Shown: positions 57,010 to 63,269, counted from the whole stretch's first letter. The stretch is 63,269 nucleotides of DNA, filler included, from Reticulomyxa filosa (GCA_000512085.1; 19 parts of 19 records of this genome joined end to end with filler, not necessarily neighbours in it), one strand, 5' to 3'. Program-made: numbers and translations. The notes: generated from the sequence alone by a model not told the origin.

Positions 57010-57125
57010 AATAATAATAATAATAATAATAATAATAGCAATAATAATAATAACACCGATGATACCGTAAATAACAATAGCAACAATGATAACCACAGTA
57101 ATAATAACAATAACAGCAATGACGA
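57010..57125 (+). repeat. (AAT)n-derived poly-Asn coding repeat
   Basis: Directly visible in the sequence. Confidence 0.85.
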
Positions 57126-59532
57126 AAATAGCAATAATCGAAAAATGACCAACCCACAACTCCTGATCAAACTCCTGTGTGTGGATCTCCACTGAAGCAT
57201 GAATCAGTGGCAAGTCGATCATTTCGCGAAGAGCCAGGATCAACTACGCACTATCGTTACAGTGAAAGTGAAGATTGCTCGCCACTGTCGAATGGAGATG
57301 AGCACGATGACAAAGATCAGTATCCTTATTCCCCGACTTCAATTCTGTTGCGAAGGCCGCGTGAAATGACCATTGACATTACAACACCGCAATTGCAGCA
57401 AAGAGGACAAAGCACGGTCAGCGCGAGCGAGGATGAGGACGATGACAACAACGACGACGCAGCCTCGTTGACAAGAGAGAACAACGATAACAGCAATGAC
57501 AATGACGAAGAAGAAGAACATTCCAAAGTTCCAAAAAGCAGAAAGAAGGCCAAAGCCAAGTTGAGAGTGAAGCTCCTCCGAATGGAGTTGCCACCAACAA
57601 TTGAACAGAAAGCGTCGTCCACAATCTATTCCAAAAGTATCAATGAAAGGTACAGCGGACAGAACAGAGACAAGCACAGCGATCAAGACAAAGACGAGGA
57701 AGATCAATCCCCACCACAGTTTCGTAGTGGCGAGAAACGAGAGTATCATAACCGTAGACAATCACAGCACTTGGCCTTAGCCATTGACGATTGCCAGTCT
57801 AACTCAAGTGAAATCTTGCATGCAGCCACTGGGTCCACCACCAAGTGGGTTGAGTCAAACACACCACCAAAGAGTAGTACTACCCACTATTTGGGCGTAC
57901 ATTTGCAAGCCGGTCAACCTGTCACCATTGCCAACAATACTGTCACTACTGCTGTCACTACTGCTGTCATTGCTGCTGCTGATCAACCCAATCAGTTATG
58001 CAAAGGCGCAATCAATGAATACATTGGAGACGGAAGTCGAACTCGCAACAGCAGTGACAATACTCCATCAGTTTCGGCCACTCCAACGGTGTTGCAAAAA
58101 AATACAGTAGCGACGAACCGCGACAATGAAGTAACTGTTGAGAGGGGGCGTAATAACAGCATTGACGTCGGAGGAATTGAATATGGACACATGCCATCCA
58201 CAACTCGAGAACGATTATTGACATTAGATCCTAGAGAAAGTGATGAAGAAAAAAAGAAGGAGGACGTCGATTAAAATCGCGCCCACAAAGACCGCAAGAT
58301 AATTATAATCAATCTCAATCGTTAGTACTGGATTCAAGTCATCACAATAAGCAATCCTCTACGGTTAGTATTACAAAGACGGAAAACCAGAAAGAAGATA
58401 AAGAAAAAAAACAAGTTTGAAATCTCATTGTGATCCCAAAAAAAAACCGGAAGGAGAGCAATCCCGTGTTTGTGAACCCTGTTTCGTCAATGTGTTTTAT
58501 TCCACTCCTCAAATGTCGCCGCAACAGATGATCGAGGGAAACTTACTTTTGTGCGACACATTGTTCAAAGTGTCCAACATCTCAAAAGATTGTGATTTAT
58601 GGCTGAAGGGCTATCACTTGTTTTCAAAGGCTTCGAATGAAGGTAACAATGCTATTGCATTAGGTGTTGTGTTGCGACCCGGCGAAGGAGAGCGATTGTT
58701 GGTAGACACCAAAATCCCCATTATTCCTTCAGAACATGTGATGCATTTCATTTGTAGCAATTGTGACGGTGGCTATCTCATTTTCGAGTTGTACACGGAT
58801 AGAGAATTGGAACAACTAGACAATCCCAAGAATATTCCAGTTTCTACCACTGGTGCCACAACCGCCAATAATCGGGGTCTGCTTTTGTCGCAATGTCGTA
58901 CCAATCGCTTAACGATGAAGACCACCAATTATACACATCGAAGACGCCAGAGCAGCGTTTGGTCTGTGTTCCCTTCTTGTCGAAGCCATCACATGTCGCC
59001 GAGTTTAACTCAATTCACCGATGATGACAGCAATACACACGCGGGCGACATACCTGATTCTTTGTGGTTGGATTTAATCATCGGTTGGAAATACAATTTG
59101 CTTTTGAACAAATGCGAATTATTCGTTTTTTTTCACGAATTTAGTACCATTGAATCATATCGAGGACAGTTCAACGGATGGGAGGTATTTACATATTTTA
59201 TTTAAATTGATTAAGTGTATCCTCGACAATGTTCACTAATACTCAAAATCTGTGTATGTGTTTTGCTTTGCTTATTTTGTTGCTTGCTGTTAATGACGTG
59301 AAAACTTTAGTCATTATCAAAGGTGGCTTGTCCCAGCGAAAATATCAACATTCGTGGTGGTCGCCATAGTGAATATTCAGTGCAAGCTCAAGTTTCTTCC
59401 TCTCTTGGGAAAGAGGCAAGCATTCGACATATTACTTTTGCAATTTCTTATCATCCTGATGCCATCCCTGAAGAAAGCGACAAAGAAACTAGTGCCAGTC
59501 CCACGAAATCAATTATCATTGATGTCGATTGA
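57010..59532 (+). CDS. Large low-complexity protein with a possible FYVE-type zinc-finger end; 5' truncated; probable frameshift near 58250
   Basis: Co-oriented ORFs 57177-58274, 58417-59205 and 59323-59532; SRVCEPCF motif; intron near 59184-59310. Confidence 0.5.
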
Positions 59533-60085: not shown

Positions 60086-63000
60086 TTATTGCAATTTTTG
60101 TATTAGTTTTATAAGTTCAATTTTTCGTTCGTCAGTTTCGTGGATACTGTGGCGTGCTTTTTGGCGAACAAAATCGATCATAAACCGACTCGCGGCATAG
60201 TTGTCGTGTCCTTTCATTTCACTGCGTATAATTTGATATTTTTCGTGATGTAATTGTATTTCACATATGTGGCCTCTGAATCGATATGGATCACCAGGAG
60301 TCGCTTTTGTTTCTTTCATATTTTTATCTTGTTCCAAAAATCGAATATTAATGAGAACATCTTTATATCCTCCTTTATAAGGACTATTAAAACGGTTCTT
60401 GATACGAAGAATTTCAATATGTGGATTTTTTTCGATAATACGTAGAGCTTCAATAATTTGTTGAATCCCTTGACAGGTAACACCTGCCCTTGCATAATCT
60501 TTGATCGAGGCATAGTCAATGAACACTTTGCCAGACGCAAACAAATCGTCTTTTTTTTCTGGTGTCTGGCTGTATCTTTTTTTGTCCCATTCACCAATGT
60601 ATTCTATAAGGTTATTATTTTCCATTAATATTCTTATTCACATATAGCAGTGATAAATTCCAACATATTTACAAAGAGAAAAAAAATTACCCAATAAACC
60701 CTTTTCAATAATTCTTTGAACGTGTTTAACCCCTGGATCGCCTTCATATTGTCCTCGAACACGATAGTTTTTGGCAATCCATCGTATCGCTTGTTGCAAC
60801 TTTTTATGCGCCAAATAAGCGGAACGCAACAAAAGGTAAATATCTTCATCTTTTTGTTTCAAGGGAGCATTTTGGTTTTTACCGCGCATGATACGATCGC
60901 AGTCATTTTTAAGCTGAGCTAAATACACTTGTTCACGGTCGCGTAGCTCTTCAAAAACTCCAACGTACCTTTGATCGTCACTGATAAGATAATCAATGAC
61001 AGGTCGAGCCAATGTACTAATGCTTGCAAATAAAAAGCTCTCATTATCCCACATGTGATACCAACCTTGTGCACTTTCAATTTGCTGTTTCTCAAACTCT
61101 GCGACGGTAGTGCGGATATGTTGTTCATATTCAACTTCCTCAATTTGGTCCATGTCAAATTGATATCCAGAGGTATGGCCATCCTCGCCATCTTCAGCGT
61201 CCTCCGCCGCGTTACCGTGTGACCCACCCGCCAAACGAATCTTGGTCTCGCGCATGGTGCTGTGAGTATATCCATTGCGCACCAAGTCTAAAATATCCAT
61301 ACAAACCACTCCTGGATCTGCCTCCAGCTGTAGTATTTGGCATTTTATATTCCATACATTCATATTTTCATAAACATGTATACACATCGAAGAGCAAACA
61401 AATAAACAAAACTATGTCTTCCGTTTTTTTAAAGGTGCGAGTATTTGCTTTTTTCTTTGTGTTTTGGGTAGATCCAGTTGATTCCGCGCTTATTTGTCGA
61501 CTCATGCTACTAAAAACGATTTTGCTGTTGGAACCACTCTTGTCCATGTTATTACTGAAATTGTTGGAAAAAGCACTGTTTGCGTGTATCAAGTCAGCAT
61601 TGTTGTTTATGATATTGTGGTCTTGGTACCCACGAGGTTCACTTTTTACTTCTTGACGAGCAAGCGACAAGGACTTTTGCGTGGAATTGACTCCAGGGAG
61701 AACGTGCTTCGATCGCAAAAACTTGCTCATTTTCACGATCGTGTATGTCTCCGTTTCTGTCCTCTGCCACGCGGAGCCGCCTTTGGATTTTTTGTTTCTA
61801 TTCGAGGATCGATCTCTGTTACGCGAGTTGGATTTGCGGTTGTCAATCGCGTCGTCCCTTTCTCTTTCTTTTTTCATATCCGACGACTGATTTCTTTGCT
61901 TGCCCTTTTGCCGCTGTTTCTGTGGGCCTTCATTGCGCCGTCTGCCTCGAGACGTTTTACTTTTGGAGTCTTTGATGACGAAATTGGAACTTGCATTGGA
62001 AATGGAGCGAATATTTTCATTGCTATTGATATTGTTATTGATATTGCTATTCATATTGAGATTGTTATTGATATTGCTATTCATATTGCTATTGCTATTA
62101 ATATTGCTATTGCTATTGCTATTCATATTGCTATTGCTATTGCTATTAGCATTGGTATTGATGTCAGTGGATAAGCTAATGATTCTTTCGAAGGACAATT
62201 GAGAGTTCAAGGAGTCCTCAATGGACGAGGATGGCAAAATGATATTGCTGTCGAGTTTGTTTGAATCGTCAATGACATCATCAGTTTCAGAGTCGATGTC
62301 ATTTTTTGACTCGTCTGCAACCAGTTTCTTGCCATCGTGCAGCTCGGCAATCATACTTTCATCACGACCAATATCCACACTATGATTCATCTCCGTCATA
62401 GTATCAGCGTCCGCGTCCATCTCCAAATCCGTGCCCAGCCCCGTGATACTAAACTCCTCATCCTCGACGCGACTGGCACTGGCACTGGGGGTCCGAATGG
62501 ACGAGTTGAGTCTCAAGTCCGAGTCATAAATGTTGGAGCCAATCAACAACGGGATGCCTCTGACTCCGGTCACGTGAGGCGATATGATCGATCTCGACGC
62601 ACTCTGATTTTCGAGCTTGCACAGCAGCACAGGCTTTTCCTGCTGGTCTTGGTTCTGCTGCGTCACCACCAATGGTGATTGCAGCATCGGTCTCAAATCC
62701 CAAATGGTCACAGTCTCGTCTTTGCTGCATGCCACGCACAATCCACGATTGATGGACAAGTCGGTGATAAAATCAAAGTGTTTATGCTGCAAGTCAGCAC
62801 AAATCCAATCAGCAGCTCGGCCCGTCTTTGAAATCGGACTTCCAATGTCCTCTTCGCTGTCATTTCGTTTTCGCTGGAATTCGCACTTCCGCCGCGCACG
62901 CGGGTGCCAAACGCACTTATGTCTGCGCGCTTCCAAAAGTACAGCTCGCCCGTGTTGGTGCCGCCGACCAACACTGTGTCGCAACTGCTGAACACCATGC

Positions 63001-63171
63001 GCACCACAAATGATCGATCTACCGTGCCACTGCTCGGCACATCCACCGTCTGGAATATAAAGTCGGGCTTATAGCAATTCATGCCTTTCTGCGACAGCAC
63101 AAACACGAGTGAGGAAAAGGTCTTGGCCAATCGAAACGCGACGGCGTAATTGGGAGCATAATTGCAGGTTC
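60086..63171 (-). CDS. WD40 repeats, Asn-rich linker and C-terminal RelA/SpoT-like nucleotidyltransferase; exons about 63171-61413, 61327-60691, 60603-60086; 5' truncated; frameshift near 62865
   Basis: WD: VGGTNTGELYFWK, HFDFITDLSINRGLCVACSKDETVTIWD. Transferase: GVKHVQRIIEKGLLEY, IKDYARAGV, RIKNRF, GGYKDVLIN, ICEIQLH, GHDNY. Both GT-AG introns keep the frame. Confidence 0.75.
62018..62152 (-). repeat. Imperfect 6-nt coding repeat (Asn-Ser/Asn-Ile/Asn-Met)
   Basis: (attgct)n-type units on the + strand. Confidence 0.85.
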
Positions 63172-63269
63172 CTATTATTCAGAGTATTTATATATACATT
63201 CATATATATATATATATACATATATATATATGTATATGTATTGTTTGGTTATAAGGGCTATGGATGACC

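Follow-up and report, generated by a model that had tools for sequence, protein, structure and literature searches.

The gene RFI_09234 of Reticulomyxa filosa lies on the minus strand at the far end of the window (the whole stretch of DNA analysed, 63,269 nucleotides with filler). The 6,260-nt piece containing it is the R. filosa contig ASPP01006975.1. At NCBI the gene is listed as a partial "hypothetical protein" (protein ETO27900.1, P0004 in our set). Its features, from the 5' end, are the following.

63172-63269, minus strand: 3' part of a probable upstream intron, read from the sequence; AT-rich with TA repeats, acceptor AG at 63173-63172
62874-63171, minus strand: coding sequence in frame A whose first full codon is at 63169; one WD40-like blade ending ELYFWK
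62856-62877, minus strand: frameshift zone located by codon-usage scoring, with short A-runs adjoining
62526-62873, minus strand: last WD40 blades, P0004 residues 1-116; Pfam WD40 E=0.089, below the cut-off
61413-62525, minus strand: Ser/Asn-rich low-complexity linker of about 370 aa (18% S, 15% N)
61328-61412, minus strand: intron 1, 85 nt, GT..AG, GC 0.27, phase 0
60691-61327, minus strand: exon 2, holding the conserved helical pre-domain and the first part of the synthetase domain
60727, 60715 and 60703, minus strand: K688, R692 and K696 of the KxxxRxxxK motif in exon 2
60604-60690, minus strand: intron 2, 87 nt, GT..AG, GC 0.22, phase 1
60086-60603, minus strand: exon 3, catalytic core and two C-terminal helices, then the stop
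Within exon 3, minus strand: D735 at 60499, R738, RxKNR, D781 at 60361, E814 at 60262, Q816
60187-60850, minus strand: whole RelA/SpoT-type synthetase domain, about P0004 647-839, interrupted by intron 2
60088-60086, minus strand: TAA at the 3' end of the gene

The bounds of the synthetase domain are those of the structural match (range 74-265 of the model of residues 575-871). The pre-domain in exon 2 carries a GWxxxW motif at P0004 575 and is helical in the structure model. Exon 2 is 68% identical to both paralogues and about 29-30% identical to the marine foraminiferal proteins, while exon 3 contains the motifs GYxDxxxN, which holds D781, and GHxxYxxxR. Searches with RFI_09234 were run exon by exon, and the spliced sequence used for folding and alignments was the public protein P0004.

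The two GT-AG introns that the original prediction had placed at 61412-61328 and 60690-60604 are compatible in frame, and the NCBI model has identical junctions. The R. filosa paralogues RFI_19972 (P0006) and RFI_00339 (P0005) have introns at identical codon positions (two of two), and the intron-less JGI contig L001, 64-74% identical, reads continuously across intron 2. The splicing is therefore confirmed by homology. The gene is also, as had been claimed, a nuclear gene of the rhizarian host, being located on an R. filosa contig with introns common to the paralogues; bacterial contamination is ruled out by the conserved introns and by a foraminiferal clade with SH-aLRT 99. The GC3 along the gene (60089-63169) falls steadily from about 0.68 at the 5' end to about 0.28 at the 3' end. 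Such a drop could reflect two fused genes or a chimeric contig, but the paralogue L003 118-2738 has the same layout and the same gradient, from about 0.65 to about 0.3 in both copies, and this explanation was rejected.

Two annotated hypothetical genes at 57010-59532 of the window (plus strand) are convergent with RFI_09234. By eye, the start of the ORF at 58417-59205 (plus strand) has a Cys/His pattern like the end of a FYVE-type zinc finger; this ORF gave no significant Pfam match. The convergent neighbours of the paralogues (L004 1872-6208 and L003 3203-3880) encode F5/8 type C (+RING) and TPR proteins. Since these domains are so common, it is probably by chance that the neighbours share domain types with the modules fused to the enzyme in marine foraminifera.

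The C-terminal domain was originally predicted to have the fold of the RelA/SpoT-type (RSH) synthetases, on the basis of motifs that are all present in it. The comparison with Pfam RelA_SpoT (PF04607) bears this out in part: exon 3 alone falls below the gathering score (E=0.011, 16.4 bits against 27), but the family profile and the structure searches match RSH synthetases. Among the relatives, Pfam RelA_SpoT is found at E<=0.01 in 27 of 110. PADLOC and NCBIfam gave no match for the synthetase domain, single-sequence searches of the PDB gave nothing significant, and a length-limited search with exon 2 alone gave no matches. The model of P0004 residues 575-871 has a pLDDT of 86 and a pTM of 0.84. 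Its top eight structural matches among 48,161 representative chains (Foldseek, VIA) are all RSH synthetases with Z from 8.7 to 11.6. They rank as RelP (Z 11.6), Tas1 (10.7), RelP, SaEAS, RelQ, Rel, CapRel and SpoT (8.7); the scores are tied (Z 10.1-11.6), so that they do not give the substrate, and enzymes making ppGpp, making ppApp or acting on tRNA are not separable by them. The profile and structure searches settle the fold despite the weak Pfam match, and the modelled domain almost certainly has the RSH-synthetase fold.

The aspartate and glutamate singled out beforehand as key residues are invariant or nearly so. In an alignment of about 110 relatives, in which the overall identity is 20-30% for most pairs, D735 is conserved in 100% and E814 in 99% of the sequences. 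The corresponding values for K688, R692, K696 and R738 are 96%, 95%, 97% and 99%. Residues R766, K768, R770, G778, D781, Q816, H832, Y835 and R839 are conserved at 92-100%, and N785 at 89%. D735 (Syn2) and E814 (Syn4) are the putative Mg-binding residues, and K688, R692, K696 and R738 the putative ATP-binding residues.

In agreement with the expected absence of further catalytic or regulatory domains, Pfam detects no HD hydrolase, TGS or ACT domain in the RFI_09234 protein, the 5' end of which is missing, or in its full-length relatives. No hydrophobic leader, signal or transmembrane segment is found in the full-length relatives either. The long RSH proteins (Rel, SpoT, plastid RSH) are characterised by an HD hydrolase, TGS, ACT and, in plastids, a leader, whereas none of these is found in the foraminiferal proteins scanned. 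There is no NACHT or NB-ARC domain in P0007, P0010, P0012 and P0156 (the 5' part of RFI_09234 being missing). A PAAR or MuF N-terminus like that of Apk1/Apk2 is also absent, WD40 or TPR being found instead, and the adjacent annotated gene is on the opposite strand.

The claimed fusion of WD40 repeats to the enzyme is recovered in full-length marine and soil relatives, which have both parts in one polypeptide or contig. Proteins of Bolivina, Nonionella and Elphidium (EukProt) have the order TPR-WD40-enzyme or WD40-discoidin-enzyme in a single chain. An intron-less soil-type contig has WD40 above the Pfam cut-off, upstream of the enzyme; the contig of P0012 is intron-less. In the model of the Bolivina protein P0007, the propeller leads through a short loose linker to helices and then to the enzyme. 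The propeller is of the 7-bladed type, with a Foldseek E of about 1e-11 to WD40 propellers, and no confident packing between propeller and enzyme is seen (pTM 0.55). The closed propeller of about seven blades is thus seen in the model of P0007, while for RFI_09234 the window holds the last blades only. These blades are 62% identical to P0006 (dN 0.16 against dS 2.1), and the WD40 segment of the paralogue aligns to the WD40-positive L008 at z=10. P0006 repeats the order blade, linker, enzyme. Its blade and enzyme are both under purifying selection, with dN of 0.16-0.21 and a dS that is saturated, and its linker is not conserved. There is little doubt that the WD40-synthetase fusion is real. Eight foraminiferal domains and three unlabelled ones form one branch with SH-aLRT 99 in a quick tree, which is unrooted, has SH-aLRT support only and gives no direction of transfer. 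From this branch the fusion appears to be old in Foraminifera.

The long disordered linker proposed as a tether is present in RFI_09234 (about 370 aa) but peculiar to the Reticulomyxa copies, the marine and soil relatives having a few tens of residues in its place. It is poorly conserved, with mostly 10-32% identity to the paralogues, and is, from these comparisons, an elaboration of Reticulomyxa. The idea that the low-complexity stretch is inserted within the last blade was rejected, because in the alignment of the paralogue with L008 (z=10) the blade is complete before the stretch begins, and the start of exon 2 gives no match (z=-0.7). An Atlas search with residues 488-640 gave no matches.

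In the WD40-discoidin-enzyme proteins, a discoidin (F5/8 type C) domain interrupts the enzyme at the loop that joins Syn3 to Syn4. The insert spans residues 812-918 of P0010 and 1004-1121 of P0012 (L005), and further copies are found in the propeller region. In P0101 a PH domain follows just after the synthetase domain.

The survey of related architectures shows that the synthetase domain is not a one-off; it belongs to a large protist family with many other partners. A profile search gave 763 relatives among 50%-identity representatives. They occur in Guillardia (several copies, automatically named "RelA/SpoT domain-containing" in UniRef), Polykrikos, Incisomonas and Namystynia, and in bacteria with eCIS-core domains. 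Two metagenome scans and one viral scan for relatives gave nothing. In other protists the fusion partners are EF-hand, TPR, ankyrin, HEAT, LRR, PH, TRP-channel and CHAT (caspase-like) domains, and in some relatives WD40 stands in the opposite order, C-terminal to the enzyme. This variety is the pattern of a putative swappable effector, and the assignment of sensor and effector roles relies mainly on the repeated pairing of the enzyme with binding modules. For example, P0074 has a TRP-channel-like partner, P0021 has CHAT and ankyrin, and P0067 has ankyrin and EF-hands. The TRP, CHAT and EF-hand fusions suggest calcium- or protease-linked control. The foraminiferal genes have few copies and are conserved, without the hypervariability of arms-race genes. 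The bacterial relatives are, by their sequences, eCIS-type toxins, one of which (P0020) matches the (p)ppApp synthetase Tas1. The Guillardia theta proteins P0015, P0019, P0025 and P0154 represent a lineage expansion of long proteins with the domain mostly near the C-terminus and no Pfam matches in the N-termini; P0019 and P0154 have consecutive locus numbers. A bacterial-type gene at L009 1278-3345 encodes two tandem Tas1-like domains and is followed by a 77-aa ORF, possibly an immunity gene.

It is useful to compare this family with the known systems. Tas1/Apk1 (PDB 6OX6) has the same synthetase-only RSH fold (Z 10.7, rmsd 2.9 A over 153 residues). Together with Apk2 and the exported alarmone synthetases, it shares KxxxRxxxK, DxxR, a non-IR pair after EIQ, and GHxxY (PMC10083569, PMC12691689, PMC12226406). 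The bacterial family members carry eCIS-core (DUF4157), which is listed among Apk1 homologues in the mBio paper; that homologue survey is confined to bacteria. However, the foraminiferal protein is eukaryotic and intron-bearing, has no secretion domain and no adjacent immunity gene, has G[YW]xDxxxN in Syn3 instead of GYxGxN, and is fused to WD40, TPR or discoidin. RelP and RelQ (PDB 6FGK, 6EWZ, 5DED) give the best structural scores (Z 11.6, rmsd 3.6 A over 158 residues) and share the metal-binding D and E and the G-Y of Syn3, but their RxKxxxSxxxK, DxxGxR, SxH and EIQIRT are all replaced and a large N-terminal fusion is added.

The fungal NLRs also have a eukaryotic cytosolic RelA_SpoT domain and WD40 repeats in one chain, arranged as RelA_SpoT-NACHT-WD40, and the RelA_SpoT domain was proposed to be the effector (Dyrka et al. 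2014, PMC4986451). The foraminiferal proteins scanned differ in lacking NACHT/NB-ARC, and their enzyme is C-terminal, so that the order is reversed. Thus the proposed sensor-plus-effector layout is observed as far as the WD40-enzyme arrangement is concerned but is not a new kind, since the fungal NLRs already pair RelA_SpoT with WD40. With divRel, the plastid RSHs and Mesh1, the common feature is a synthetase-only RSH in a eukaryote with no partner hydrolase domain. The divRel proteins occur sporadically in Dictyostelium, ascomycetes and diatoms and are unplaced (Atkinson et al. 2011, PMC3153485), whereas the present protist family is large, mostly under the Pfam cut-off, with its own invariant motifs, many fusions and no targeting leader. 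The tRNA-pyrophosphorylating toxSAS enzymes CapRel and FaRel2 have the same fold, and CapRel is a sensor-enzyme fusion in immunity, but this likeness is one of fold, and PADLOC gives no match for the foraminiferal proteins. RelA/SpoT-like toxin domains are known in bacteria (PMC3482391). The foraminiferal enzyme, judged by sequence, resembles a toxin-type small alarmone synthetase and is outside RelP/Q, long RSH, Apk1/2 and the fungal NLRs as these are defined. A literature search of incomplete coverage found no description of this protist family and no paper pairing foraminifera with ppGpp.

The motifs around the acceptor may be compared in the same way. None of the canonical motifs RxKxxxSxxxK, DxxGxR, SxH and EIQIRT is found in the RFI_09234 protein. 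It shares KxxxRxxxK, DxxR and GHxxY with Tas1, where RelP has RxKxxxSxxxK and DxxGxR; the Apk-type Syn2 DxxR and the non-IR pair after EIQ are present as DYAR and EIQLH. Guanosine enzymes have AVR at syn2, SxH at syn3 and IR at syn4, while Apk2 has RYT, GxN and YH, and SxH is described as the guanosine-recognising site (PMC12226406). The RFI_09234 protein has RAG, DxL and LH at these positions; it resembles the Apk type at two of them and is unique in the remaining one. In Syn3 of about 110 relatives, D occupies the S position in 100% and a hydrophobic residue the H position in most. The family Syn3 is DxL or DxM with N two residues later; the Apk GxN is absent, Tas1 having GYSGVN. The suggestion that the motif changes alter specificity is plausible, with SxH absent and DxxR and EIQxH as in the Apk type. 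Since SxH is absent and Syn1, Syn2 and Syn4 are of the Tas1/Apk type, an adenine nucleotide would be the most likely acceptor.

Alternatively, the same sensor-gated enzyme could be a cytosolic eukaryotic synthetase of ppGpp, making (p)ppGpp alone or together with (p)ppApp, and its targets may be symbionts or bacteria that the cell has engulfed. RelP ranks first in the structure and profile searches: the family profile matches RelP at E=4.6e-9 and Tas1 at 1.1e-8, and a foraminifera-only profile reaches RelP alone (E=0.0014) and not Tas1, although the bacterial member P0020 matches Tas1 at 5e-10 against 0.92 for RelP. In addition, some Apk1-like enzymes make (p)ppGpp, VpEAS and AaEAS making only this product and SaEAS both alarmones (PMC12691689), and motif swaps did not switch specificity (PMC12226406). 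The guanosine-recognising SxH, however, is missing in all relatives, and this reading is considered unlikely.

The acceptor could also be a macromolecule presented by WD40/TPR, modules that typically serve as substrate adaptors. It could be the tRNA 3'-CCA, as for FaRel2 and CapRel, a different RNA end, or a protein. CapRel (Z 10.1-10.4) scores level with the other structural matches, the tRNA-acting toxSAS enzymes have no clear sequence signature (10.1101/2021.04.30.441581), and D781, N785, H832, Y835 and R839 are specific to the family as invariant residues; the extra invariant D781 may even support a different chemistry of nucleotidyl-transfer type. The nearest characterised motif set is nevertheless that of the nucleotide-acting Apk type, and a macromolecular acceptor has a small but appreciable chance of being correct.

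The 5' end of RFI_09234 has to be considered separately. The single frame originally read from 63171 does not hold, as the frame switches at 62856-62877. Frame A, called as coding by codon score, lies outside the NCBI model, which begins at 62873 and is flagged partial; frame A runs into a stop at 62710, and frame B holds the second WD-like blade and all that follows. The frame A blade weakly matches the corresponding blade of the Nonionella protein P0010 (phmmer E=0.012; hhalign P=0.0015), and its match to L008 is not significant (z=0.3). It is unlikely that the two frames are joined by a hidden intron, because the candidates have 49-65% GC and atypical ends while real introns have 17-31% GC. 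The likeliest cause is an assembly slip next to the A-runs; the frameshift was left unrepaired. In the paralogue, L003 1-117 is an AT-rich intron ending just before an ADWIC blade, close to the frameshift site of RFI_09234, where the latter has no intron. The sequence from 63172 up to the contig edge is intron-like, each of the three frames being closed by stops within 63174-63260, and only two or three blades are inside the piece. The gene extends past the contig edge and most of the propeller is outside.

If the frameshift near 62865 is real, the RFI_09234 copy would be a recent pseudogene or encode a shorter product, and the reading of the family would depend on the other copies. In favour of this, the change of frame is clear-cut, there is no plausible intron across it, and the gene has two paralogues. 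On the other hand, the lesion is the only one and adjoins A-runs, the draft assembly is fragmented (contigs of 5-6 kb), and about 870 downstream codons are open and under strong purifying selection. Early R. filosa sequence data are prone to homopolymer errors, and a true pseudogene is quite improbable. The enzyme is very probably active as judged from its residues. Another reading is a WD40 protein with a structural or scaffolding role, in which the domain binds nucleotides without catalysis; the loss of the RxK arginine from Syn1 and the remodelled Syn3 would fit this, and low copy number and conservation would suit a housekeeping scaffold. This reading is very unlikely, since D, E and the basic residues stay 92-100% conserved in bacteria and several protist lineages although the overall identity is 20-30%, and the active enzyme Tas1 has the same Syn1 change.

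The reading we favour, though tentatively, is a sensor-gated cytosolic 3'-pyrophosphokinase with an adenine-nucleotide acceptor. RFI_09234 would encode a cytosolic synthetase-only RSH-fold enzyme located behind a WD40 propeller. Mg2+ would be held by D735 and E814, as in all characterised RSH synthetases, and K688, R692, K696, R738 and R766/K768/R770 would form the basic ATP pocket. Pyrophosphate would be moved from ATP to a ribose 3'-OH, most likely of an adenine nucleotide, giving (p)ppApp. The propeller, with TPR or discoidin in relatives, may keep the enzyme off or localised as long as no protein or glycan cue is bound. In a stress or anti-microbe response, the enzyme could then act by producing a second messenger or by draining ATP locally.

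To our knowledge, the characterised eukaryotic alarmone synthetases are plastid enzymes. A 2021 review describes ppGpp in eukaryotic cell lines with the synthetase not known (PMC8118318). RFI_09234 represents a broad, apparently uncharacterised protist family, which provides concrete candidates for cytosolic synthetases, with catalytic residues intact, in plastid-free protists. A new product might come to light through the remodelled acceptor strand, and the number of sensor fusions suggests that a signalling or defence output is widespread and has mostly escaped the Pfam cut-offs. It is conceivable, though we hold it with considerable reserve, that many unrelated protists, plastid-free ones included, run a cytosolic pyrophosphorylated-nucleotide system on a Tas1/Apk-related enzyme wired to varied sensors, the foraminiferal protein being the WD40-gated form that makes (p)ppApp or a new nucleotide as second messenger. 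If this is true, the system would be a parallel to cGAS/CD-NTase signalling, with an enzyme common to bacterial toxins and with WD40, TPR, ankyrin, LRR, EF-hand, TRP-channel and caspase-like sensors.
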